Shown here in pieces: positions 2,991-64,000 of a stretch of 64,000 nucleotides of DNA (its first letter is position 1; every line of letters starts with the position of its first letter). Origin of the DNA: Podarcis melisellensis (Eukaryota); NCBI GenBank assembly GCA_964234715.1, contig OZ174276.1. One strand, 5' to 3'. The notes under the pieces were generated by a model, which worked only from the letters and a program-made list of their open reading frames with translations, was not told the origin of the DNA and made no database searches. A program made the position numbers and the translations under genes.

Positions 2991-4504
2991 CAAGCAAGCA
3001 GAGATTGTTTTATGAGGGGTGGGAATGGCCCAGAGACCTCATTTGTGATCTTCAATTGAGTGGCCTAATTCTGATTCCCATACAGTTTGAAGGCCTCCAG
3101 CACCCACTGCTTCATGAACTAATAGATTGTTGTATATAGGGAAGCGGCATCTTTCAGGTCATATGCTGGTTACAGCTGCATTGTTATAATCTGTAATGAT
3201 TAGCTATGGCTGTAAGACAGCAATGAGTTATTACTTTGACTTGTCAGTTGGTTGTTGTAGCTATGTAAAAATTGAGGTCATTGACAAATGTTGCCTAAAG
3301 TCAGTGCACGAAGCTGTTGTTTGACATGAGCTAGGCAGAAAAGAGGTGTTTAGAGATGGGGTTGGGAACTGCTTGTCTGCATGACATTACAGAAGACTTT
3401 TGGTCAATGTTGAAGGTATCTATGTTGGTGCAACATTATATGCATAGTGTTTAGCACTGCAGCAAATTATTATGTTGGAAGTTGCTATTGACAGGGATGG
3501 ATGAGCTGTTGCTACAACTGATTCATATCAAAACCATTTTGTGCATCTTCACAGTCACACAACTTAAGTTTCTCTTGTCTCTTTCTTGTTCTTCAGATTG
3601 CAAGTGCCTTGGGATGAGGATGGATATATTTATTTAGAACATTTATTGGCAGCCCAAGTGACAAAGTCCTCTGGGTAGTTCACACAGAGTACAATTTAAA
3701 CATTGATTTTCAGTGTTTAAATTAATCATTCCCTGCCCTTCAAAACTAGCACTAGCAGCATAACAGCATTTAAAGTCAGAGAAAAACAATCAGTCTATGA
3801 GTATTCTGGGGCAATATGCATCTTGCTCTTCTTCGCCAGGACTTGTTAGATCCCTGAAATGTTTAAGCTGTAAGCTAAACTAGAAAGAATTGTAGTCTGT
3901 GGCCATAATAGTTTTTAAAAGTGGACAATCATTGCAGCATATATTTAAGTAACTGTATTAGTTATGCTGCAAATGTAATCAAGTTCTGTGGTGCCTTAAC
4001 TGCACTTGGGATAGTGGTGTCTAGCTCTCTCTCTTTTAAGTTCTCAATACCATGCTGCTATGCAAACTTGCCACCCAAGATGAATAAAATTTCATTGGGT
4101 GATCATCACAGAAATACTAGTACTTCTTTAAAATTATAGCAGAAATTATAATAGAAAACATACTATGTATGTAACATGGATGGACGTTTCTAATTTTTGT
4201 GAATGTCCAAATATGTAATTTTTTCAGGCTCTCCCATCTCCTGACAAAATTTACTGTGACTTTTGCTGTTGAACACTGTATTTACTTATTCTGCCTCACC
4301 CTACAAATTATGAAAGTTGCTGTGTGAATAAGTGTATGTCAAGTACTCATGTGTAATACAGTCATTACATTTCCACAGGCTCTTCTGTCATCCCAGTAGC
4401 ACGTATGAGCAATTCAAGTTTGCATGACTATGCTTTGCAGGTTGCAATCACTATCTTTTTCTCTTAATGATGCTCAGGTTGTGTCTAATAGTCATAAGCA
4501 GTAT

Positions 4505-5260
4505 AAAAGTTATGGGACAGAGATAGCTTTGGTTGCCTTGGTGGATAACTTAACAATGGGAACTGGACAGGGGGAGTGTGTCCTTGTTGATTCTGCCTGA
4601 CCTCTTTGTGGCTTTCAAAGCCATTGACCATGGTAGCCTTGCTGGGATAGGACTTGGAGGCCCTGTTTTACAGTGGTTCCATTCCTTTCTGGAGGGGTCA
4701 ACCCAGAAGTTAGTGCTGGGGGACTCTTGTTTGACACCTTGGCTGCTGGCTTGCGCAGTCCCTCAATGTTATGTTTTGTCCCTCATGCCACTGGGAGAGG
4801 TAATCCAGAGTTTCAGAGTTTGGTGTCACTAGTATGCTCTTTTTCTCCTTTCCACCTGAATCCAAGGAAGCTGTCTTGATTTTACTGGTGTCTGTGATCA
4901 GTAATGGACTGGATGAGGGTGAGCAAATTGAAATGTAATCTACAGATAGGCAAGACGTAGATGCTCTTGGTCAGTCAGAAAGCATAACAGGGAACAGAGA
5001 TTCCAACTGTGCTATGTGGGGTAGCACTCCCTCTGAAGACACAGGTTTGCTGTTTGGGCATGCTCCTGGACTCAGCCCTGATCATGATCACTCAGGTTTC
5101 TTTGGTGACCAGGAGTACATTTGCACAGTTAAAGCTAGTGTGCTAGCTGTGCCTGTTCCTTGAGATGTCTGATTTGACCACAGTGACACACACCTTAGGT
5201 ACATGCCGTTTGGAATACTGTAATGCCCTCTTCTTGGGAATGCCTTTGAAAAGTGTATTG
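4505..5260 (+). mobile_element. L2 LINE reverse-transcriptase fragment (decayed)
   Basis: GTEIALVALVD...SLLILPDLFVAFKAIDHG...VLQWFHSFL, typical of L2 RT, with frameshifts. Confidence 0.75.
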
Positions 5261-5986
5261 CTCTAAATGTTGAACATTCAGATACTGCTGATAGGTCTGG
5301 AACTGTTATGGGTGGAAGACACTATTTTTCAGTGGTCTGCTCCTTTCTAATTGCTCAGTATTGGAAGGTAGCATTTGATGACTTCTGTTCAACTATATAC
5401 CTGCTGTATATCATAAGGAACTACTTTGTCCATCCTGCCATTGAATGGGATTGTCTGATTTATGGATTGGGATGCTATTGATATTTGGATAACAAATGAA
5501 ATTATTATTTTATTTTTACAACGATTTCAGAAGTGGCATTTGTTTTAGCAAATAAAATGTGTAGCATGATCTGCACTATGCAAGGGATATCTCCTTAGTA
5601 ATGGCATTCTGAGATTGCGCATGGTAGAGCAGCCATTCACATAAAATCTAACTTTTGTGATGCTTGTTTTATTCTATCTCTGTCAGTTGCCATGGAAGTG
5701 TTTCTATGACAAATCATTAACTTTATGGGAATAGTCTACTTCAAAGACTGAGAATATGTGACGGAAACAGATGAGGGGTGGGTTGTGCTTAGTGGCTAAC
5801 AAAAGGGGGGAGAATGGACCCTAGAAGTTGCAAAGAAGAACAATGATACACTCTGGCTCTGGCTTTTCTCTCTAGTTCTGGTGTGAAATGAGAATATACC
5901 ACAGAAAAGCTCCACAGTTTCTGAAGAGAAAATGGTAGGTCAGTGAGCTTAATTCCCTTCTCTGGGTTGTTACGTGGGGTTGCATC

Positions 5987-6112
5987 AAGTGTGGTGTAGT
6001 GGTTAGAGTGTCGGACTAGGACCTGGGAGACCCGGGTTCGAATTTCCACACAGCCAAGAAGCTCACTGGGTGACCTTGGGCCAATCACCTGGTCTCAGCC
6101 TAGCCTACTTCA
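5987..6112 (+). mobile_element. Squam3-like SINE 5' half
   Basis: GTGTGGTGTAGTGGTTAGAGTGTCGGACTAGGACCTGGGAGACCCGGGTTCGAAT tRNA-like head with A/B boxes. Confidence 0.75.
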
Positions 6113-6723
6113 GCTAATGTATGCTGCCTGCTGGTTAGCCAGAAGTGGATGAACTGTTGATGAACAATGCTGGGTATACCAACACATGATAAACTTACCC
6201 TTGAATTCTCCTATTGAGGACTTTGGTGGCATATTTGAAATCCGTAACTTCAGGACTGATGCATTCTATAGAGAAGCTAGCAAACCAACATAATTTTTGT
6301 ATAGCTCATTGCTTTACATTTGCCTATATGTAAAGCAACATAAGTGCTCCTCTGTGATTTCTACAATGGAATATATAAGGGTAATAAATTAAATGTTTGT
6401 GTTTGGTTATTGAACATAATTTTGTTGGGTGCTCATCCTGAAGATTGCTTTGTGTAGTGCAAAGTATTTCATTTTTAGTTTATTGTATACCATGGCACCT
6501 ATGTAACATTTGCATTTGCTTTTCATTTTGTCTGTCTACATGTGTTGTTTCTCTGTGTAACTTAAGATTATGTAGTATGGATCTTCCACACTCAGTGGAA
6601 ACCTTTTAAAATGCTGAAATATCTCTTTCAACTCCTTTTGTTGAGAGGTTTTAACATTTTAGCTTTTCTTTTTAGACTGAACATTCTTCAAGATCTGAAA
6701 GGAAGAGACGTGATTCGTTCGGG

Positions 6724-6877
6724 ATGTTTGATGGTTATGATAGCTGTAGTGAGGATACCAGTAGTAGCTCAAGCTCTGATGAGAGTGAAGAGGAAGTTGC
6801 ACCTTTACCCTCAAACCTCCCAATTATCAAGAACAATGGACAGGTCTACACATATCCAGATGGCAAATCTGGCATGG
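6724..6877 (+). CDS. MBTD1: MBTD1 coding exon 1 (exon begins 6676; canonical ATG 6724)
   Basis: MFDGYDSCSEDTSSSSSSDESEEEVAPLPSNLPIIKNNGQVYTYPDGKSGM matches the MBTD1 N-terminus; acceptor tttag|ACT at 6675/6676; donor G|gtgagt. Confidence 0.96.
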
Positions 6878-7974
6878 GTGAGTGTATGATTTTTCAGTGG
6901 AATGCTAAATCAAATGGCCACTTCTGATTTCTCTGGTGCCAACTTCTTTTTTCTGCTTGGATGTTAGGAGCAGTGACCAAAGACTGATGCACATATGTGT
7001 CGCTTTGTGTGAAGACTGTTCTACTGTTTCATGTCAGTAAACTACAGCTAAACTGCTCCTAGACAACCATAGAAGTGTGCTTAAGTCCTAACAAAGTGCG
7101 TGCATGATTCCTTCCTTTAGCATGCTTACAGAAAAATATTCAGAGTCAGCGTCAGGAAGAAGGGGACATCGCCACACCTGAAAACTTAAGAGATATTGGC
7201 TTGGATCCATAGTTCCCATAGGTGGTAATTGACTACACTCACTCAGAGAAGGCTTACTGAAATTAATTAATCTAACTTAGTCATGTTCAGTAATTTCAGT
7301 GGATCTGCTCTAAGTAAACTTGAATATCACCCCCTGAGTTCCCCTCACAGGGCTTTCTCACTGGAGAAGAGGAGGAGGTGAATGTTGTCCGTTCCTGCAT
7401 CTTATTGCAGACACTGAATAGTTGCTCTGGTGGCTAGTGGGACCATCTTGAACAGTGTTGAGGTGCTCTTGGGGGAACAGGAAGCAGCAACAATTGCCAC
7501 CCTCCCTTCCTCCAGTGGGAGCCTGTACTGAATCTCAATCCCTTCCATTTGGGGAAGTTGCACCTTGGATCTAGCCCATTGGAGAGGTGGCACACGCTCC
7601 TCTACCAACGAAGCCACAAGCTAAACCATCCAGCATTTCTGCTGAAATCTTCCCAAGCCATGCTCCAGATTTCCTCTCCATGTCTGTGCATGCACACAAA
7701 GTTCACAAAAATTGATACAGAAGAGGTTCTAATCCCAGTTGGGATAGTAGGGGGCAAGATAAGAAAAGAAGAGCAAGATTTGGGATGAGGGAAGCTTGTG
7801 TGTGTGTGTTGCCTTTTATCTGAGGATCACAGGGTGGGTGACAGTATAAAAACTCAAAAATACACAACATAGTAACAAACAAGACAATAACACACCCCAG
7901 CTATTTAAAGACTTATCTGATTTTATGAAAACAAATGATTTAAGTAATCGTTTCTAGTGCAGTATGCTGTTTAT

Positions 7975-8373
7975 TAGGGCTTGGCAATATCTGGTTTTCA
8001 ACAACGTGATATATCATCAGCTAAACATCGTGATATACCAGTTGAAGTAAGGTTGTAACTATTTAGAAGCGAATGGGGTAATGTGCCTGCAACTGCTACT
8101 ACTTTGGGGTCTAAAACTGATACATGTTTACTTACCTTTAACATGTTGGGACAACTGTTATTTTATAGTACAGAGCAACAGGGGCGTCATGAATCATGTG
8201 AGAAGTGATGACTGGCTTCATTGTTTTCCCCACACCACAATTTTTTTTTACAAAGCACACACATACATCATGATTCATGATACACCACCATGTCAGATAT
8301 TATGAAACCATTATGAAACCATGCAGACCGCAAACCAATTTTGGATTATGTATCAATACATTGCCCAGCCCTA
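7975..8373. mobile_element. hAT (Ac-like) MITE
   Basis: TIRs TAGGGCTTGGCAAT / ATTGCCCAGCCCTA; 8-bp TSD ctgtttat / ctgtttgt. Confidence 0.75.
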
Positions 8374-8940
8374 CTGTTTGTAGCATACTTGTGGAGGATG
8401 CCTTCACCCAGTTTTGGAAGGGTTTTCCCCTCAGCCTGCACATTGAGTACAGGCCCTTGACTCTCCTGAGAGCCTTTATGAAGGGCTGCTGGGGAGAAGA
8501 GAAGAAGGAGCAGGGAAGTCAGCTTCTGCCAGCCTTCTTCTGTGGGTTAGATCTGGAGAAAAGCACGTTATGCTCAAATAAGTAAATTATTTGGGACATT
8601 AAAACTTTTTTTGTACAGTGGAAGTGGTAGTTCATTCTCTTCAACAGAAACGAATCTCCCATGTCAAATTAAGGAAAGAGAAAGAGAAATAAGTCCAAGA
8701 TAAAAAGCTGTTTAGAATCTACATAGAAGCTATTAAATATCTGATTGATGAAGGATTGTATTATAAAGATAATATATAATGCATATTTATATTTGTGGTG
8801 TGTCTAAGTGTTGATAGCCAACACACATTTTGAGTTGACTATCTTGTATGTAGACTGCATAGAGCCATGGCTGCTTGACAATGAATGTGGCACTTTATAG
8901 TATAGATGTAATACATTGGCCATCTTTCTCCCTTTATCAG

Positions 8941-11407: not shown

Positions 11408-12987
11408 TTGTTATTTGTACAAATCAAGAAGTACAAACCATCATTTGGAGGATCAGGAATGAACCATTATAGTAATGGTGATGATGATGATAATAATTTA
11501 TTTATACGCCACCCACCCGGTTGGGTTTCCCATCTATGCATGACTTCCTCTTCCTTTTGCACAATTAACTTAATAGATGCTGGCTGGTTTGTCAAACCAC
11601 ATTTTGCCATGACAGCAAAACTAGCAAAGTTGTTTGAGTGACCTATCTGAACCAGGATCAGACAGTTCATGGACAGATTCTTCCATTCCAAACCATTATT
11701 TGGAGGCTAAGAAAATGTGATACTGGAATGTATTTATTTAATAAGTTAATGTAAGTTAGTTTGTACAAATGTAGTTTTAGTTACCTTGGGTTGCGTACAA
11801 CACTGCTGTTCCACTCACACAACATACGGTACTTCCACATGTGCAGTGGAAATGACCCTTCTCTCCCCTCTTGTGAAACCCCTCCAAATCTGTTCCAGAG
11901 AGTTAGGGGACCCTCTGGAGCAGATTTTGTGGACATGCAGGGAGAAAGAGGACGTCCTGTTAAATAAGGGAGACACTGCTCATGCAGCATTACCTTCTTT
12001 ACATCTTCCTTTCAAACAGCTGCATTGATATCACTGTGCATATATGTCGGAGAACACTTTAAGTACAAGCTTCAGATACACAGATGAGATTGGACTGAAG
12101 AATGCTAATCTCCACTCCATTACGTAATGGGTGTAAAAGTTGCTTTAAAGCTCGGTAGTCCAAATACTTTCAATTGGCCTCTGCAAAAGCCAGTGTAAGA
12201 ATAATACTAACATTTTATTTTAAAATTCCATCATGTTTGCAATGTACATTTTTGCTAATGTATAATGCCAGCCTTGAAGGAAAGATTGTACAATGGATTT
12301 AACTGCCAAGGGCTATTTGCACCTGCAGTGTTAGATATCCTTCTAACAGCAGAATACTAATGCATTTTCATCTGAGAGCGCTTGTTAAGCTTGAAAGATC
12401 ATGACTAATTCCATTGCTCTCTCCCAAATCCTAGTTCAAGAGTTTTGAATAATTAGGATTCGGTGTTACTTGTAATGTTAGAATGCAGTGATCAGAAACA
12501 TGATTTTTATATATTAAGCTTATAAGCTACATCCCCCCCCCCATTTTTGCTTGTGTTTCCTTTGAGACATCAAAAATTAAAGAAGATATCATGCCTTGAT
12601 AGGTTTTGGTAGCATCTGTTAGTTTGTACAGTCCTTCACTGAAACAAAATATATTTTTGTCTGCGTTTTGGGCTTGGATTGCACATCAGTTTTGTAGCAT
12701 ATGGAATGCATGCTACACCTTTCCTATTTTTGTCAGTGCACAAATGCCACGTGGTTATAGTAACATTCAGTATTTAAAGAAAATTCAAATTAATGTTAAA
12801 ATAGCAGCAGGCTAGGTGGTCTTTTGAATGGGATTTACCCAGAAACTGTTTTTTAAAAAAAGCTTTCTGATTAATTCTGTTTCTGAAACTGCAGTTACAT
12901 TTTGTGCAGCAGATTTCCAGAAACCCTGCTTCTAAAACGTCTTGATGTGAGTTTGAAAAGAACCTTATTCAGCTCTTGTTGTTTTAG

Positions 12988-48704: not shown

Positions 48705-49583
48705 CCGTATTTTTCGCACCATAGGACGCACCTTTTCCCTCCTAAAAAGGGGAAATGTGTGTGCGTCCTATGGAGCGAATGCAGGCTTTCGCTGAAGCCT
48801 GGAGAGTGAGAGGGGTCGGTGCGCACCGGCCCCTCTCGCTCTCCAGGCTTTGGGAAGCTATCCGCTAGCCGTGGGAGACCCAGCTCTCCCACGGCTAGCG
48901 GAGCGCTGCATCAATCCCGAAGCTTGGGGCGTGCGGAGCTCAGCGCGCCCCAAGCTTCTGGGTGCCGGCAAGGTCTCCGCTAGCCGTCTAGACCTTGCTG
49001 GCTTCCAGAAGCTTGGAGGCGCTGAGCTCCACACACCCCAAGCTTCGGGATTAGCGCTCCACTAGCCGTGTCTAGGCTGCGGATAGCAGCCTGCTTCCCG
49101 GAGCGTCGGGCGCCCTGAAAGCAGAGCACCCGGCGCTTCAGGAACACACCCGCAGCGTGGGGAGTCCTGCAGGAGTTCCCCACAGGGCTCCCCACGCTGC
49201 GGATAGCAGCCTGCCGCCCGGCGGGTGGGGCGCCCTGAAGCAGAGCGCCCCTCGCGCCGGGCAGACATCCGCAAGGTGCGGAGCCCTGCAGGAGTTCCCC
49301 GCAAGGCTCCCCACGCTGCGGATAGCAGCCTGCTGCCTGGCAGGTGGGGCCCGCTGAAGCAGAGCGCCCCGCGCGCCAGGCAGACATCAGCCAGCCCCAC
49401 AAGCTCGGGGGACAGCAGGGAGGCGCAGCGCCACTATCCCGCTGTTCCTTGACCTGGTTTGGCTTCCCTGACCTGCTTTTGGGGGGGAAATAAAGGGAAA
49501 TTTTTCCCCCTTTATTTCCCCCCCCCCAAAAAAAACTAGGTGCGTCCTATGGTCCGGTGCGTCCAATCGTGCGAAAAATACGG
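48705..49583. mobile_element. Tc2-like non-autonomous DNA transposon (879 bp, GC-rich, internal tandem modules)
   Basis: TA|CCGTATTTTTCGCAC...GTGCGAAAAATACGG|TA. Confidence 0.88.
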
Positions 49584-53431: not shown

Positions 53432-53451
53432 TCTCTCTCTCATACACATAC

Positions 53452-53487
<36 letters not shown>
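53432..53487. repeat. (CT)n/(CA)n microsatellite
   Basis: ctctctctc followed by cataca/caca run. Confidence 0.9.
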
Positions 53488-53545
53488 TGCAGAAAAAGGT
53501 TCTCTAATCCTGCTTTACTGCACCATTTACCAAGATTAAACTTAC

Positions 53546-53674
53546 ATGCATAAATTTCATAGCCACCAGTTTGAATCCCTTCTGTTCAAATCGCTTGATG
53601 ATTTCACCTATGATTCCCCGCTGGACTCCATCAGGCTTGATGGCAATGAATGTGCGCTCTGTGTTGGAAGCCAT
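53546..53674 (-). CDS. NME2: NME2 coding exon 1 (exon starts 53681, ATG 53674)
   Basis: [43 protein letters not shown]; total CDS 462 nt = 153 aa NDP kinase. Confidence 0.95.
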
Positions 53675-54479
53675 TATCTCACTGCAAAAGAAACGCTAAG
53701 AGAAGTGAGTAGGATTGGAATTATACCCACAAACCACCACAGAAGATGAACTTATAGAGGGAAGGAGTGCAATCAAGATAAGTAAGATTTTACAGCAGGA
53801 CCAATGCCACAGAAGAACCTAGAACAGGTTACCCTAACCTATTGCCATCTAGTCGTCCTTGGACAGCAAATCCCATCATCCCTGACTGGTGGCTATGCTC
53901 ACTGGGGCCGATGGAAGTTTGAGCCAAACATCTTGAGGGCATCAGGTTGAGAAACACATGTGAAAAAATGCACAAGGTACTTCCTGTTCGTCAAGGTGAC
54001 CGCTGTTCAACATTAAGAGGTCAACTCACCAACAGTAAAACAGGGCTAATGAATTATTATTATTTTGAATTTCTTGTAGAAATGTTAAGTTAGCTTTTAA
54101 AGGACAAGCTGTGTGATAAATTGTCTCCCTTGAACTGGTATACCATTAACTCTATGAGAAAGTGGCAACAGCAGTTGGCAGCCTCCAATGTCATTCCTTC
54201 TTTGCTCTTACGACTTTTGAGATCTGCCATCTTAGGAGCACACCAAGTCCTGTGATTTATTAAGAATCCTTTCAGTAACAATATAGTTTTCATCTTCAAG
54301 TTGGGAATGCATGAAAATCTTACTTTAAAGAGCAACCCAATGCATTCGAACAGGACACAAAAGCAACCAGGGAACAGACTGGGTGCTCTTTGTTTCATTT
54401 TTAAAAATATCTGCAGCATCACCAAATAGATAATAAGGAATCGTATTCAGGGCCATAGCTAGGGGGTGGTAAGGTGGGG

Positions 54480-55620
54480 TCCTGCCAGGGACGCAAGCGG
54501 GGGGGCGCGAAAAATCGGCTAAAAAATATGTCTATGATCACATGGCATGGCGTATTTGAATGGCAATGCCCATGAACTGCGGGGAGGAGGGCTGTCCCCC
54601 TCAAATATTTTAAGGGACGGGAGCAAAGGTACCTCGGCCCCTAGGAGTTGGCTCCTATGTTATACGATATAATGGAGGTCGGATTTCATGGGGGGGGTGT
54701 TTTGGCAGGCTTTGGGGCTTCCTCCCCGCCCTGTTGCAATTCTACACCCCTCCCCCCCCCCCAAGCAACGGGGCAGGCACCATTCGACTGCACGTGGGCA
54801 AGCCTTCCTCCACCATCCGTCCACGTGTCGCGGAAGAGCCCTTTGTTACCCTCCCCTCGGGCGGCGTCTATTTGGGCCTCTCCGCCCTGGGGCTGCAATC
54901 CTACACCCATTTACCCGGGAGTAAGCCCCACTTAATCCAACGGGACTGACTTCCGAGTAGACAGGCACAGGCATGTGCTCTGCGGCGGCAGGGCTGCCGC
55001 CTTCTTCTTCTCGCCTCGGCCGCCTCAAGTTACAGAGGCCCCCGAGGGGAGGCGAGGAGAGGTGGCTGCGCCTCACAGGCGGCTGCAAAATGCGCTCTTT
55101 TTTTTGCAAAAGGCACCCCCCCAGCCGCCATTTCCTCTTTAGCCGGCTCCAGCTGCATTTCTTCCTCCTCTTTTTTTTTTTGCCCCAGAACCTCGTTTTG
55201 GTTTTTTCCTCCAAGAAGAAAGACTAAAGAAAAGGGTGGGTGGTGGGAATAAAGCTCACCTCAGCTGCAAGGAGTCTGGTCGGGCCCGGAGAGCGTGTCT
55301 GCAGCTGCCGTCTCCCTGCAAATCTCCAGGGGAAGAGGCGGAGCAAGGCCGGGCCGGCGCCGGAGACAAGCCGGGAGGGGAGCAAAGGAGGCGGGCTTGG
55401 TCGTGGGCTGCCTCCTCCTCCTCCTACTCCGCGGAGGTCCCTCGCCGCCGCTTTGGTTTTTGCAATCTGAGCAGATGGTGGTTCCCCGCCTCGCCCCAGG
55501 ATCCCGAGTTGGAGGGGGAAAACATGCCAGCAGCATTTCTGTGTTTTCTCCACTCCAGTCAGTGGAGGAAACAGTCTGAACAATATACAGCACAAAGCAA
55601 CCCGGAGATTGCTTATCCTC
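54480..55620. promoter_or_regulatory. CpG island / NME2 promoter and first intron
   Basis: Very high GC and CpG density; GC-box-like motifs, two CACGTG E-boxes, YY1-type GCCGCCATTT at 55124. Confidence 0.85.
55260..55340 (-). other. NME2: NME2 putative non-coding first exon
   Basis: Strong donor CTGAG|gtgagc at 55260/55259 inside the CpG island; pyrimidine-rich candidate start CTCTTCCCC at ~55337; 5' boundary is a guess. Confidence 0.6.
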
Positions 55621-56403
55621 AGAACTCGTTGAAATGAATGGACCCGAGTTATATAGGGTACCCCTAATCTTGTCCGCTACTTAGAAGTAAGTCCTATAGA
55701 ATTCAGTGGGACTTGCTCCCAGGGAAATGGGGATGGGGTTGCAGCCTCAGTCACGTTCGTAGGTGACAAAAGCCAGGGATTTTAATCTGCATGGGGCCAG
55801 GGGGCTGATGGGAGCGGATAGGGATTTTGACAGGTGGGTGCTCCTGCTCACCTGTCAGATTTGGCCTGTGAGGCAGATCCTGATAAAAATCTGGCCCGTG
55901 GATCCTAAAAGGTTCTCCACCTGCTCTAGCTACGGAGAGCCCATCAGTACAAGCCTGCCTCTCTGATGCAGAGGGGAAGCTGATAAAATCAGATAAAACA
56001 TGCTTTGTAGCAGACTGTCTGGGATTCCCATTTTTTAAACAACGCAACTTAAAGTCCTCTGCCTTTTTGCCAAGAACGTGTAAACTGTGCTATGATGTGC
56101 TTTGATTTTTCCACCAAGCCCAAGCATGTAACTTTGCTTTCCACAGTATCACAGGCTTCTCAGTGTAATAATTTCATGAGGTATTTTTGCTCCCATTAAC
56201 ATGTTGCAGCCTTTAACCACTTCCTCCAATCACTCCTCAAATTGACTTATTTACAAAGGAGATCCATTACTTCTCCTGCTAATAGTTAAAGGAACCCACG
56301 CATCCCCAAATAGATCAGGCCCTCAGGACAGAAGTTATTTTTCACAATTTCCTTGCTGAAAATCTCTTCCCCTCCTCCTGCAAAAGATGCTATTAACACC
56401 AGT

Positions 56404-56571
56404 CAGTGGCGTAGCGTGGGGGGTGCAGGGGGGGCGGCCGCACCGGGCGCAACATCTGGGGGTTAGGGTTAGGGTGCGCAAATCCATGGGTTAGGGGGCG
56501 CAAATCCATGGGTTAGGGGGCGCAAATTACTTGTCTTGCCCCGGGTGCTGACAACCCACGCTACGCCACTG
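56404..56571. mobile_element. hAT (Tip100-like) MITE carrying TTAGGG motifs
   Basis: TIR CAGTGGCGTAGCGTGGG / CCCACGCTACGCCACTG; perfect 8-bp TSD acaccagt. Confidence 0.9.
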
Positions 56572-57499
56572 ACACCAGTTGAGGCAGGAACATGTAATGA
56601 GGATACCCATCCCCCACCACCAATACTAATACCAGCTTCATGGATGTAATTTCTAGTGGGGAAACTGGGCAGGCGAAAGTGTTAGCACCCTTTCTTGCAG
56701 TGCTGTAGCCTGGGTCCAGTTCAGGTGGATCTTCAGCTGCTTTTAAGTCTTGTGGAGAAAATAAACAATCATATGTATTTGATCATCAAACATGCTAAAC
56801 TGGGGTTTGCACTGTGGAAAGGAACATAGTTTTGGGGAGGACTGCTCAGGATTTCATGTGCTGAAGATCCCAGGTTGAAACCCAGCATTTCCATTTAAAA
56901 GGAGCAGCTGGCAGATCATGGAGGAGACCTCTGTCAATACTTTGGGGAGCCACTACCAGTCAGAGGAGACACTACTGGAATGACCTGGTGTAAGGCGATT
57001 TCTTATGATCAGAGTTGAGAAATTATAATTCATGATCTGAGCTTTCAAACGTACAAGCCAATCATGCTGAAGAGCAGCCTGTCTGCTTTCTTAACTGTGA
57101 TACATAGCATGAATTACGTTTTTATAGCTCATGTAATCAGGATAAGGAAACATGTACGCAGATGTAATGAAGCTCAACAGAATTAAGAAGCAATACTGTA
57201 CAATGCCCTCCTTTCCAACAACAAACAGAGTAATAGAAATGAGTGACAGGAGGCACAACTTAGTGAATGTCCCTCGTATTAATCGCCTTTTCTCATAATG
57301 CATTTCATAAGCATCTATACTAATCTTGCCTTAAAATGGCCTATGAGCAGAGTTAGAATTAGAGGGGATAAAAGAGTTTAATAACCATCTGTATAAAGCT
57401 TTATTTTCAAAGTGATACCGCAACCCATGTGTATCCACTAGAAGCAAAACCAACATTTAAAATTTGCCAATATTTGTTACAATTAAGTTTTATCCAGTG

Positions 57500-59031
57500 C
57501 CACTATTGAGGATGTGTTGTGGGAACACTGTCAACTTATGCAATCTGCTGATGTGGGCAAGGTGCTGGCAGCAGTACATCTGACCACATGTCCCCTTGAC
57601 CCCTGTCCCTCCTGGCTTACTAATTCTAGCAGAGGGCAGCTGACTGGTTGGGTCTAGAGTGTAGTTAACACTTCATTGTATGAGGGATGGTCCCTGCTGC
57701 CTTGAAAGGGGCAACTGCTAAAGTGTGGCAGCTCCTAAAGCAATTGACTCTGGACCCCTTAGGCTAGAGCAACTATCAGCTAGTTACAAATACCTGGTCA
57801 GGGGCCTGAGTCTCCCTGGGTCGCCCTGATGGATGACCTTTGCAGAGAGCAGGACACAGAGAGTGTGACCTTGCTTCTGCTTCTTGATCTCTTGTTCATT
57901 CACCATGGAATCCCTCTGGACTGGCTCTGGGGAATGGGAATTGGGACCACAGTATTCTAGTGGTTCCAATCCTGCTTTTGGGACAGAGTCCAGAGACTAG
58001 CATTGGGAAGGTGCTTTTCGGCTCCCTGGGCAGCTATGTTATGGGCTGCCACTTGACGTCCTCTTATTTCCAATGCTATTTACTATCTGCATGAAGCCAC
58101 TGGGAGCAGTCATTGGGAGTTTTAGGGCAGGGTCTGTTTCTCCATAACATAACTCAGCTCTATTTCTCTATAACAGCTGAATTAGGAGAGGCCATACAGG
58201 CTCTGGGCTGTTGCTTGGATGCAGTGGTGAGATGGATGAGGGAAAACAAGCTCAACTTGGACCCTGGCAAGATGGAGGCACTGTGGGTGAGTAACTCCCA
58301 TGTCTGAGAAATTGGGTCAGTTGCCTGCCCTGGGTGGATTGTACTCCCCCTGAAGGAAGAGGTTCGCAGTTTTGGGGAGCTTCTGAATCCAGTTCTGTCA
58401 CTTGAGGTTCAGGTAGCCTCAGTGCCTTTTACCAGCTGCAATTGGTACAGCAGCTACACCCATTCCTGGACCAGGAAAGCTTGGTCACAGTAGTCCAGGT
58501 ATTGGTTACTTCAAGGCTGGATTACTGTAATGTACTCTTGTGAGGCTTCCCTTGCACCTGATTTAGAAGTTGCAGTTAGTACAGAATGCTGCTGCACGAT
58601 TGCTGATAAGAGCCAGCACATAACACCTGTGTTCCGTGCCAATTTGCTACCGGGTCAGGTTCAAATTGTTAGTATATAAAGCCCTTAGCAACTTGGGACC
58701 AGTCTACATGCAAGATCACCTCATATGCCAATTCAACCACTTCAGTCTGTAGAACTGGCACTCAATATTTTAGTGTGGCAGCATCTACACTTTGGAACTC
58801 CCTGCCTATTGATATCAGACAAGCACATTCACTGTGCACTTTTGGCACCTACCCAGATATCTAGAATGTTGATGTGTGTTTTAATCTGTTTTTAGTTTAT
58901 TACTGGTTTTAATTTTTTGTATGTTTTAAATAATTGTTTTTACTGATAATTTCATTGCTTTATTCTTTTTGTAAACCATTTTGAGGGTTGTTGTTTTTTT
59001 ACAGTCAGGTGGTATATAAATTTTATGAAAT
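57500..59031 (+). mobile_element. L2 LINE, decayed 3' ~1.5 kb
   Basis: L2 RT motifs (TTCPLDPCPSW; VVRWMRENKLNLDPGKME; LVTSRLDYCN; KLQLVQNAAARL) and L2-type 3' end. Confidence 0.8.
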
Positions 59032-59251
59032 CTATCTATCAAATAGATTACATTCTATAAGTATTCAATATGCTGTGATTACACCATATTTAAATTACAC
59101 TGTAGTGTAATGATTTGCATTGCTGCATTCATGACCTGACATTTTAAGGTGAAACAGAAGAGCCACTCTGCTGATCCATTCAGGGAGTATGTTATTTATC
59201 ACTTGTGTAACATATTCAGTGGCAAATGGTTTGTATACAATAGCTTCTCAT

Positions 59252-59416
59252 AATAGTAGTAGTAGTAGTAGTAGTAGTAGTAATAATAATAATAATAATT
59301 TATTTATACCCCACCCATCTGGCTGGGTTTCCTCAGCCACTCTGGGCAGCTTCCAACAAAATATTAAAATACAATAGTCTGTTAAACATTAAAAGCTTCC
59401 CTAAACAGGGCTGTCC
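59252..59416 (-). mobile_element. L2-like 3' end with (AGT)n(AAT)n microsatellite tail
   Basis: Same family as 33942-34103; tail runs into AAT and AGT repeats. Confidence 0.7.
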
Positions 59417-59749
59417 TAAACAGCCCTTCTCATCTTGCAAACTCATAAATATGAACAACCTAAAGTAATGGTTGACTCCATTGAGTACAGTAAATATAAT
59501 AAAATTAAGCATGTGCGTTTGATAACTGCTGAAGGAGAGCAAAAGTGTGTTCTCTTCTTCAACAGCCCCTCACCCCATTTACTTTTCTAATGAATAAAAG
59601 TATATTCCAGTTTAGTTAAAACCTTCAGTCAGCACAACAAATACAATTAACATTTATAAATCACACAGGGCATTTGGGGAAACAATTTTAGAGGATATTG
59701 GAGGTAGGAACTGTTTCCAGATAAACATAACAAAGGAATACACAAGTTT

Positions 59750-59867
59750 TTAATCATAGATCCATGGGTGCTCACAGCTTGTGTAGTCGACAATTTCTTC
59801 TGGTGTGAACCATAGGTTGATTTCAATCTCAGCATTTTCTACAGAGTCACTGCCATGAATTATATTT
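59750..59867 (-). CDS. NME1: NME1 last coding exon
   Basis: [42 protein letters not shown]; tttcag| acceptor; upstream tandem position and DYTSC/WIY are NME1-like. Confidence 0.88.
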
Positions 59868-60528
59868 CTGAAAGGGCAATAAAGTTGAAAAGAATTTGAT
59901 CATTATGGTAATCAAACAGAAAAACATAGAAATAATAGTTTTATTGGCTGTTATGTATTGACAAATGGACAATAACCCCTCCCCACATATTAATATACTC
60001 CATATGCTGCAACAGAGAAATGTCGTTGCTGGATGTAACGTGAAACCCTTGTGTTTCAGTAATTGTTTGCTACTATAACAAGCTATTTCTTTTCCACTCC
60101 TTTGCACCCTCCTTAGACAAAGTGTTTATTTCCTACAGGGCATATTAAACTGTGTGCAAAGTTTCCAAGTCTTAAATGTAAACCACAGTCCAAAGTTTTT
60201 ATAATGCTACTTGTTAGACAAGCCTATGGTGCTCAAAGGGGAAAACAATATCGCACAATGTATTCTTTGTAAAGGAACTCTGAGGTGCTACAACAGCAGT
60301 GTTTGATGTTTTTAGCAGGCCAGCCTCTCTCCATAACCAAGGCCATCACATGCAGTAGCATAAGGAAATGTGGCAGGAGGAACTATGGAAAATACAGGCA
60401 CTGAGATAATGAAAAAGGCAAAAGCAGGGCTTGTTAGGCTTGCTGTAATGTTGGGGAGCTACTATGAGAAGCACCAGCTGTTCAGGTCATAACTATTAAT
60501 TTACACTCCAAATGTCTTTTTAAAAATA

Positions 60529-60778
60529 CAGTCATACCTTGGAAGTCAAATGGAATCCGTTCCAGAAGTCTGTTTGGCTTCCAAAACGTTTCGAAACCAA
60601 AGTGCGGCTTCTGATTGGCTGCAGGAAGCTCCTGCAGCCAATCAGAAGCCATGGAAGCCCCATTGGATGTTCAGCTTCCAAAAATAGTTCACGAACTGGA
60701 ACAGTCACTTCTGGGTTTGCAGTGTTTGGGAGCCAAAATGTTTGAGAACTAAGCTATTCGAAAACCAAGGTACGACTG
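60529..60778. mobile_element. Tigger-like MITE, family B
   Basis: TA|CAGTCATACCTTGG...CCAAGGTACGACTG|TA; internal palindrome GCTTCTGATTGGCTGCAGGA/TCCTGCAGCCAATCAGAAGC. Confidence 0.82.
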
Positions 60779-60792
60779 TAGTAGTAGTAGTA

Positions 60793-61204
60793 CCATAATT
60801 TTCCATGTATAACATGCCACCGTGTATAAGACGCCCCCTATTTTGGGGGACAGAATTAATAAAATGGGGGGATTTGCACAGAGTTGTTGAGCATTTTGGG
60901 GGGAGGATTGCCCAGGGTTGTTTTTTGGGGGGAGAGGATTGCTCACTTAGCCCCCTAAACAACACTTCCAGAAGCCAACAAACGTCTGACCGCTCGCCCC
61001 CAGAGGCTGCCTATCGCCCACTCAATCAATAAAAGCCCTTGATGCAGACACTTATCACGCGCACTACCGCCACTGACAATCTCCTGCTCGTGGCAGCAAC
61101 CAGTCCCCCGTCCCCCCTCTCTACTACCCATGTATAAGATGACCCCTATTTTTATACATTACTTCATTGAAAAAAATCCTTGTCTAATACACAGAAAAGT
61201 AAGG
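60793..61204. mobile_element. Older Tc2-like MITE
   Basis: TA|CCATAATTTTCCATGTATAA ... TAATACACAGAAAAGTAAGG|TA; internal GTATAAGA(C/T)G repeats. Confidence 0.55.
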
Positions 61205-61467
61205 TAAAGCTAAAGGGACCCCTGACCATTAGGTCCAGTCGTGACCGACTCTGGGGTTGCGGCGCTCATCTCGCTTTATTGGCCGAGGGAGCATGACTAA
61301 GCCGCTTCTGGCGAACCAGAGCAGCGCACAGAAATGCCGTTTACCTTCCGGCTAGAGCAGTACCTATTTATCTATTTGCACTTTGACGTGCTTTCGAACT
61401 GCTAGGTTGGCAGGAGCAGGGACGGGAGCTCACCCCGTTGTGGGGACTCGAACTGCTGACCTTCTGA
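61203..61467 (-). mobile_element. Sauria SINE, truncated with internal deletions
   Basis: Reverse complement of the 9784-10137 family. Confidence 0.88.
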
Positions 61468-61477
61468 GTACTGTACA

Positions 61478-61478
<1 letters not shown>

Positions 61479-61512
<34 letters not shown>
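61479..61512. repeat. (AAT)n microsatellite
   Basis: About 11 AAT units. Confidence 0.9.
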
Positions 61513-61513
<1 letters not shown>

Positions 61514-61599
61514 CACAGATATAATATTTGTATCCTAACTGCATGTATACTAGAACTAGTTAGCAATTCCATTTTGTAAGACGACAATTTGGAATTTAC

Positions 61600-61712
61600 C
61601 TGCCAACTTGCACACAGAAGTCACCGCGAATTGTGCCAGGTTTGGAATCTGCAGGATTAGTTTCTCCCAGCATTACTCTTCCGGTCTTAACTACATTGAG
61701 GCCTTCCCATAC
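61600..61712 (-). CDS. NME1: NME1 penultimate coding exon (earlier exons lie beyond the window)
   Basis: [37 protein letters not shown]; ttgaag| and AG|gtaaat; 113 nt. Confidence 0.9.
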
Positions 61713-62317: not shown

Positions 62318-62559
62318 CAGTGGTACCTCAGGTTAAGTACTTAATTCATTCCAGAGGTCTGTTCTTAACCTGAAACTGTTCTTAACCTGAAGCACCACTT
62401 TAGCTAATGGGGCCTCCTGCTGCCGCCACACCTCCGGAGCACGATTTCTGTTCTTATCTTGAAGCAAAGTTCTTAAGCCGAGGTAATATTTCTGGGTAAG
62501 CGAAGTCTGTAACCTGAAGCATATGAAACCTGAAGTGTATGTAACCCGAGGTACCACTG
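62318..62559. mobile_element. Tigger-like MITE, family A
   Basis: TA|CAGTGGTACCTC...GAGGTACCACTG|TA. Confidence 0.85.
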
Positions 62560-62716
62560 TATAGCATTATGCCCATTTAAGCCCCACTGATTTTTATGGG
62601 ACTTAGATGACCAGAATGAATGTGTTGCTCACAGGAACATATGAAGCTGGCTCTTACTTAGCAAGACCACTGGTCCATCTGTTCCATCCAGTACAGTTTA
62701 CTCTGACTATGAGCTA

Positions 62717-63173
62717 CCGTATTTTTCGCACCATAGGGCGCACCGGACCATAGGGCGCACCCATTTTTTTGGGGGGGGGAAATAAAGGGGAAAAAATTCT
62801 TTCCCCCCCCCCCAGGCGCGGGGCTGGGGCGGGGGAAGCTCGAGCTTCCCCCGACCCCAGCCCGCAAACAGGCAGCTCTCTGCAAGCCGTGGGAGCACTC
62901 CCGCTGCTTGTGGAGAGGTCCGCGAAGCCTGGGCGCGCTGAGCTCAGCGCGCGCAGGCTTCGGCATGCTGGCAACTCTCCGCAAGGAGCCGGAGCGCTCC
63001 GGCTCCTTGCGGAGAGGTCCGCGAAGCCTGGAGAGCATGAGGGGTCGGTGCGCACCGACCCCTCTCACTCTCCAGGCTTCAGCGAAAGCCTACATTTGCA
63101 CCATAGGACGCACACACATTTCCCCTTCATTTTTGGAGGGGAAAAAGTGCGTCCTATGGTGCGAAAAATACGG
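62717..63173. mobile_element. Tc2-like MITE (same family as 48705, opposite orientation)
   Basis: TA|CCGTATTTTTCGCACCATAGG...CCTATGGTGCGAAAAATACGG|TA. Confidence 0.88.
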
Positions 63174-63399
63174 TATTCTTTTTCATTTGGTAGCCTGGGG
63201 GGGGGGGAATCCCCTTCTGCTTTTGTGGCTGAGTGTTGCCACATTGTGTATGTTGGTGGGTCAGCCAGTCAAATTTATTTGCTAAACACCAATAGCCATC
63301 ACAAAAATGCAAATTTTCAGGTAGAGGGATACATTTTAACAGAGGCGATCCCCAACACATTGGACCCCAACTTGTGTGATAATTTTATTATCTCATCTA

Positions 63400-63979: not shown

Positions 63980-64000
63980 CACAGGCATTCCACTGCATCT

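Follow-up and report, generated by a model that had tools for sequence, protein, structure and literature searches.

The tandem genes NME1 and NME2 of the lizard Podarcis melisellensis are arranged such that splicing of the penultimate NME1 exon to the start exon of NME2 would yield an open, in-frame read-through message of the NM23-LV type. We analysed 64,000 nt of contig OZ174276.1 (GenBank assembly GCA_964234715.1), a stretch referred to here as the window. The potential for an in-frame join is genuine and widespread, but also ordinary, inherited, broken in at least one squamate and already documented for lizards. We consider it likely that the fit is a by-product of history: it would have been inherited at duplication, and read-through, as in human, would occur at a low level and would not be under selection.

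Motif scans and exon mapping located two group-I nucleoside diphosphate kinase (NDPK) genes on the minus strand of the window, NME1 with its 3' half and NME2 with its complete set of coding exons (Table 2). The NME1 ortholog lies upstream of NME2, adjacent and on the same strand, which is the arrangement of the NM23-LV type conjoined gene. It is represented by its last two exons, exons 1-3 lying beyond base 64000. All six exon peptides match the Pfam family NDK (PF00334) with 29.5-53.3 bits, above the curated cut-off of 27, and together they tile positions 1-135 of the model, with exon 5 covering 111-135; the NIIHGSD motif is present in the last exon of each gene, which places both in the NDK family. 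The NME2 exons are identical to the proteins of Lacerta agilis / Podarcis muralis v2 and P. lilfordi (152/152 residues) and differ at one position from that of P. raffonei (151/152). For NME1, 73 of the 75 residues in the window are shared with Zootoca NDK-A, including all 37 of exon 4. These identities agree with an origin of the window from a lacertid near Podarcis or Lacerta.

NME1 exon 4 ends with ...GTT GGC AG/gtaaat (slashes mark splice boundaries), a phase-2 donor (CAG/gtaaat at 61600/61599). The NME2 start exon opens with a 7-base leader, TGAGATA (53681-53675), followed by the ATG at 53674-53672. Joining 61600 to 53681 with a splice script gave AG/T GAG ATA ATG, i.e. S-E-I-M, without a stop; donor and acceptor are thus compatible in phase and the leader is stop-free. 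An earlier, sequence-only reading of this DNA had been correct on the phase-2 end of the penultimate NME1 exon, on the 7-nt leader and on the open frame despite a leader beginning with TGA. The 4-nt human leader that it cited agrees with the orang-utan, mouse and other mammalian models reading QVG-R-T-M, and its chance expectation of about 1 in 3 is close to our own figure of about 0.3 per species for an open in-frame join. As chance is that high, an in-frame join in a single species carries almost no information by itself.

The cag/ acceptor at 53681 is the conserved one: it is found at the same position in agamid, snake, gecko, turtle and bird, and is also the one used in a P. lilfordi read-through model described below. 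From the same exon-4 donor, an upstream acceptor (tag/C, 53695) leads out of frame into a stop (AGC ... AGA TAA), and a GAG/ acceptor 4 bases downstream gives AGA TAA, again with a stop. The upstream acceptor appears in RefSeq P. raffonei NME2 isoform X1 (255 aa), which runs from the exon-1 donor at 55260 to 53695 and, starting at an ATG near 55536, gains 102 residues at its N-terminus; the corresponding codon in the window differs (CGT vs CAT).

We compared leader lengths, defined as the number of bases from the splice acceptor to the ATG, across species. The leaders read from DNA are those of the species in Table 1, a sample made up of a lacertid, an agamid, a snake, a gecko, a turtle, a bird and an amphibian.

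Table 1. Leaders of NME2 and of NME1 itself, read from DNA
Species and gene	Acceptor/leader	Length (bases)	Join to NME1 exon 4	NME1 own leader
Window (lacertid), NME2	cag/TGAGATA	7	in frame, S-E-I	outside window
Phrynocephalus forsythii, NME2	cag/TGGAATA	7	in frame, S-G-I	GACG (4)
Crotalus horridus, NME2	cag/AATT	4	in frame, R-I	not in locus
Gekko kuhli, NME2	cag/TGTTAATT	8	out of frame	NME1 start exon not in locus
Mauremys mutica, NME2	cag/GACA	4	in frame, R-T	GACA (4)
Zosterops borbonicus, NME2	cag/CGCC	4	in frame, S-A	GACC (4)
Xenopus tropicalis, single gene	cag/G	1	no NME1 partner	no NDK gene within 6 kb upstream

Protein models add to this picture. A 7-base leader follows from those of Anolis, Pogona and Phrynosoma (S-G-I-M), and 4 bases are implied by about ten mammal models (QVG-R-T-M or R-A-M), two further turtle models (R-T or R-I) and two bird models (S-A or S-T). 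The 4-base class hence comprises mammals, birds, turtles and a snake, the 7-base class lacertids and iguanians, and in-frame compatibility of the NME1-NME2 join is widespread in amniotes. The sequence-only reading had proposed leader length modulo 3 across amniotes as a check. Length is 1 mod 3 in the mammals, birds, turtles and other squamates sampled, but the 8-base leader of Gekko kuhli (GCA_051903775.1, locus 12280-12287) breaks the pattern, as the sole exception among the NME2 leaders that we saw. In this gecko, NME1 has remained the near upstream neighbour of NME2, in the same orientation; a join from exon 4 would begin with SVNY... and meet a stop after 17 codons, and the acceptor is also that of the gecko's own gene model (...VVLIM). 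The source protein record of this species is flagged UNVERIFIED_CONTAM, which makes the count of 8 bases provisional. A 75-aa fragment from a Logan contig, apparently a squamate-like genomic open reading frame, hints at a 10-base leader (1 mod 3) if its acceptor is the usual cag/.

The history of the leader can be read from the paralogs. Since a 4-base leader is present on both of them (Mauremys GACA/GACA, Zosterops GACC/CGCC), it predates the duplication, and the read-through frame therefore fitted from the day the tandem pair arose. NME1's own leader, which is beyond the reach of any constraint acting on a fusion, is equally conserved (GACG, GACA, GACC; all 4 bases). In Xenopus tropicalis, where no NDK gene was found within 6 kb upstream of the single gene, the leader is also 1 mod 3, and a 1 mod 3 leader is, as judged from these sequences, the ancestral state. 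A Kozak context together with an abutting acceptor would be a sufficient reason for the slow evolution of the leader. The locus illustrates well that, when a gene whose 5' leader is very short is duplicated in tandem, an in-frame read-through option arises automatically. More generally, conservation of a reading frame is weak evidence of function unless it is set against a control; the controls here are NME1's own leader and the single-copy amphibian gene.

We propose that the ancestral gene already possessed a 4-base, Kozak-bearing leader, which both paralogs inherited. Transcription proceeding past the NME1 poly(A) sites would allow the exon-4 donor to skip the terminal exon and to pair with the acceptor of NME2 exon 2, giving a predicted chimera of the NM23-LV type with some 270 residues (about 114 from NME1, S-E-I, and 153 from NME2). 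Any such transcript must cross the CpG island at 54500-55750, which is likely the promoter and non-coding exon 1 of NME2. A 3-base change of the leader in the lacertid and iguanian lineage would then have preserved the frame by chance, whereas compatibility would have been lost in a gecko.

As for the nature of the product, the NME1 part of this chimera would span only Pfam NDK positions 1-108 of 135, lacking the exon with the catalytic histidine and the C-terminal segment: the catalytic histidine (NIIHGSD) is encoded in the last NME1 exon, which is precisely the one skipped by an NM23-LV-type join. The sequence-only reading had spoken of a double-domain NDPK. Because the exon with NME1's catalytic histidine is missing, this designation does not apply, and the predicted product is one full kinase preceded by a truncated N-terminal copy. 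An AlphaFold2 prediction for the fused model of an agamid reached a mean pLDDT of 33, too low for use, based on a shallow alignment of 10 rows.

That frame preservation points to an ancient, selected amniote product had been the central suggestion of the sequence-only reading. It amounts to saying that the chimeric protein is functional and under purifying selection across amniotes, and that the leader stays 1 mod 3 for this reason. We regard this as unlikely. It is true that all NME2 leaders read from DNA other than that of Gekko are 1 mod 3, at lengths of 1, 4 and 7 bases, that fused NME1-NME2 models exist in mammals, birds, turtles and lizards, and that a human chimeric protein has been reported (Valentijn 2006). 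However, the same 4-base leader on the start exon of NME1 itself represents a state older than any fusion, Xenopus is 1 mod 3 without a partner gene, and Gekko is out of frame although its genes are adjacent. The fused models are moreover a biased sample, because a gene predictor can fuse only where the frame fits. The NME1 part would lack the catalytic exon, expression of the human fusion is far below that of NME1 and NME2 (PMC7782836), and chicken was reported to have separated genes and no read-through, an inversion being inferred by Desvignes et al. 2009 (PMC2777172). Proof of selection would make this one of the few proteins from conjoined genes to have been conserved over about 300 million years, and would assign a function to NM23-LV. 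In the passerine Zosterops borbonicus (locus 4382-8434), the two genes are neighbours in the same orientation with about 4 kb between them, and there is a fused model for a duck (Anas); the separation in chicken is therefore not general for birds.

Some observations weigh against a purely historical explanation. At least four changes of the leader can be inferred (1/4, 4/7, 7/4 in the snake, 7/8 in the gecko), and three of them are multiples of three. This exceeds the expectation of a naive indel model, so that a weak constraint is possible. The gecko exception comes from a single assembly; short runs of T and A are frequent in its leader, and an assembly error of 1 base could occur there. Finally, a read-through product is annotated in P. 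lilfordi, and some chimeric RNA may be real. Within squamates, two or three length changes keep the frame and one breaks it; with so few events, weak constraint, chance and 3-base shifts of the acceptor are inseparable. A bolder scenario would be that the NME2 leader underwent three or more changes of exactly three bases each (1, 4, 7, with a return to 4 in the snake) due to a selected chimeric subunit in most amniotes, perhaps one tuning the assembly of mixed NDPK hexamers, with geckos and chicken as secondary losses; we think this quite improbable. The opposite extreme, that NME1 terminates efficiently, no meaningful chimeric RNA is made in the lizard and the in-frame fit is an unused coincidence, strikes us as very improbable. 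Several AATAAA/ATTAAA signals do follow the NME1 stop (59304 down to 57382), the RefSeq entries returned for Podarcis and Zootoca are separate genes, and the searches returned neither an exon-4-type fused lacertid model nor a Logan-derived fused reptile protein. In the protein collections searched, no lacertid protein model has the exon-4-to-start-exon junction, and a word search with the 45-residue NME2 start exon returned nothing but fragments (25-79 aa), in which a QVG-x-M join was absent. Yet absence from protein databases is weak evidence, as rare isoforms are seldom assembled, and read-through is common between genes 4-6 kb apart (PMC2953495).

This raises the question of which route a lacertid read-through would take. 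The lacertid NME2 cluster (90%) contains CAI5765919.1, a 314-aa protein annotated as 'NME1-NME2 readthrough transcript [Podarcis lilfordi]', in which NME1 continues through ...WFTPEEI, followed by GDGSCRHALRARPDSLQL, then by S-E-I-M and all of NME2. Its route maps exactly onto the window, leading from the donor at 59792 via 55315-55260 (56 bases) to 53681, with an open frame. The model shares with the window the genus-level lineage and the acceptor at the 7-base leader, and it is in frame, but it differs from the join considered above in leaving NME1 via a weak donor in the last exon and in passing through 56 bases of NME2 exon 1. From its sequence, a product of this kind would keep both catalytic histidines, and this is the only route that would retain that of NME1. 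It is conceivable, though doubtful, that this is the real lacertid read-through, encoding a true two-domain kinase. In its favour, the model fits the window base for base, including an identical GDGSCRHALRARPDSLQL-SEI-M linker, and the P. lilfordi annotation drew on Illumina RNA-seq and PacBio Iso-Seq data through PASA (PMC10214862). On the other hand, its first donor, ATT/gtcgac, is far from consensus, and the pipeline also took ab initio predictions into EVM, the product name stemming from Blast2GO similarity (PMC10214862); the model may therefore be a computational merge.

The idea of a lizard NME1-NME2 read-through is already known, both from the anole (PMC2777172) and from the GenBank entry of P. 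lilfordi, and in-frame conjoined genes of such origin form a known class, of which NME1-NME2 is the textbook case (PMC2953495). Human NM23-LV, or NmeLV (Valentijn et al. 2006; NP_001018146, 267 aa), resembles the arrangement in the window in the tandem order of NME1 and NME2 on one strand, in the phase-2 end of the penultimate NME1 exon after ...QVG with a direct join to the NME2 start exon, in a leader of 1 mod 3 and in keeping the whole of NME2 in the chimera. It differs in that the mammalian leader has 4 bases (R-T) and that of the window 7 (S-E-I); NME2 of the window has 153 aa. Desvignes et al. 2009 listed an NmeLV read-through for the anole lizard, but not for chicken (PMC2777172). The anole protein (ENSACAP00000002161) is a squamate read-through of the same two genes, and Anolis NME2, reading S-G-I-M, belongs to the 7-base class; unlike the lacertid case, it is from Iguania, and it is a genebuild model published without junction detail. 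A further counterpart is the hypothetical protein JRQ81_002117 of Phrynocephalus forsythii (267 aa), which has exactly the junction proposed by the sequence-only reading, from cag/TGGAATA-ATG. Here the differences are one linker residue and its status as an automated annotation model.

The exon-4 sequences of NME1 and NME2 are distinguished by 21 of their 113 bases, and 19 of these changes fall on third codon positions. As these differences are mostly synonymous, the duplication is old and the copies have not been homogenised recently. In a protein tree of 24 NME1/NME2 sequences, a sauropsid NME1 clade was recovered (support 92/87), and mammalian NDK-A and NDK-B grouped together (89/81), apart from the sauropsid NDK-A clade. 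Gene conversion, rate effects or independent duplications could account for this mammalian grouping. The approximately unbiased (AU) test did not reject a single NME1 clade of amniotes (p-AU 0.23), and the tree does not distinguish between one duplication in amniotes and several. For the age of the pair we therefore rely not on the tree but on synteny in the literature: Desvignes et al. 2009 (PMC2777172) dated the cis-duplication to a time preceding or close to the amniote radiation.

Table 2. Exons, splice sites and CpG island of the NME1-NME2 locus in the window
Feature	Position	Strand	Remarks
NME1-type exon 4 (penultimate)	61712-61600	minus	encodes VWEG...FCVQVG plus AG; Pfam NDK positions 73-108
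NME1-type last exon (exon 5)	59867-59750	minus	acceptor ctttcag/A; (R)NIIHGSD through WIYD; stop TAA 59752-59750
Weak internal donor ATT/gtcgac in NME1 last exon	59786-59792	minus	exon part ends 59792; used by the P. lilfordi read-through model
CpG island	54500-55750	minus	GC 0.58-0.61, CpG observed/expected about 0.6
NME2 non-coding exon 1	ends at 55260	minus	donor GAG/gtgagc at 55260/55259; within CpG island
3' part (56 bases) of NME2 exon 1	55315-55260	minus	acceptor tttgcag/GGAGAC, donor GAG/gtgagc; P. lilfordi model linker GDGSCRHALRARPDSLQL plus AG
Extra 14 bases via upstream acceptor cttag/C at 53695	53682-53695	minus	21-base leader; RefSeq P. raffonei isoform X1
NME2 start exon (exon 2)	53681-53546	minus	acceptor ttttgcag/, 43 codons, donor CAT/gtaagt; Pfam positions 1-38
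NME2 exon 3	51648-51547	minus	Pfam NDK positions 40-72
NME2 exon 4	50589-50477	minus	Pfam NDK positions 73-108
NME2 exon 5 (last coding)	49953-49836	minus	stop TAG 49838-49836; Pfam NDK positions 111-135

Dispersed, SINE-like repeats that are 73-90% identical occur in the NME introns and upstream (62316-62431/63398-63513; 53000-53077/62404-62481; 60527-60746/63740-63941). Simple repeats are found just inside two introns, namely an (ATT)n run in NME1 intron 4 (about 61480-61530) and a (TG)n/(TGTA)n microsatellite in NME2 intron 2 (about 53440-53490). A GC-rich block at 62500-63250, with a CpG observed/expected ratio of about 0.7, contains no NDK exon. A second CpG island (49001-49500, GC 0.68) begins to appear some 350-850 bases beyond the NME2 stop codon and possibly represents the promoter of the gene that follows.

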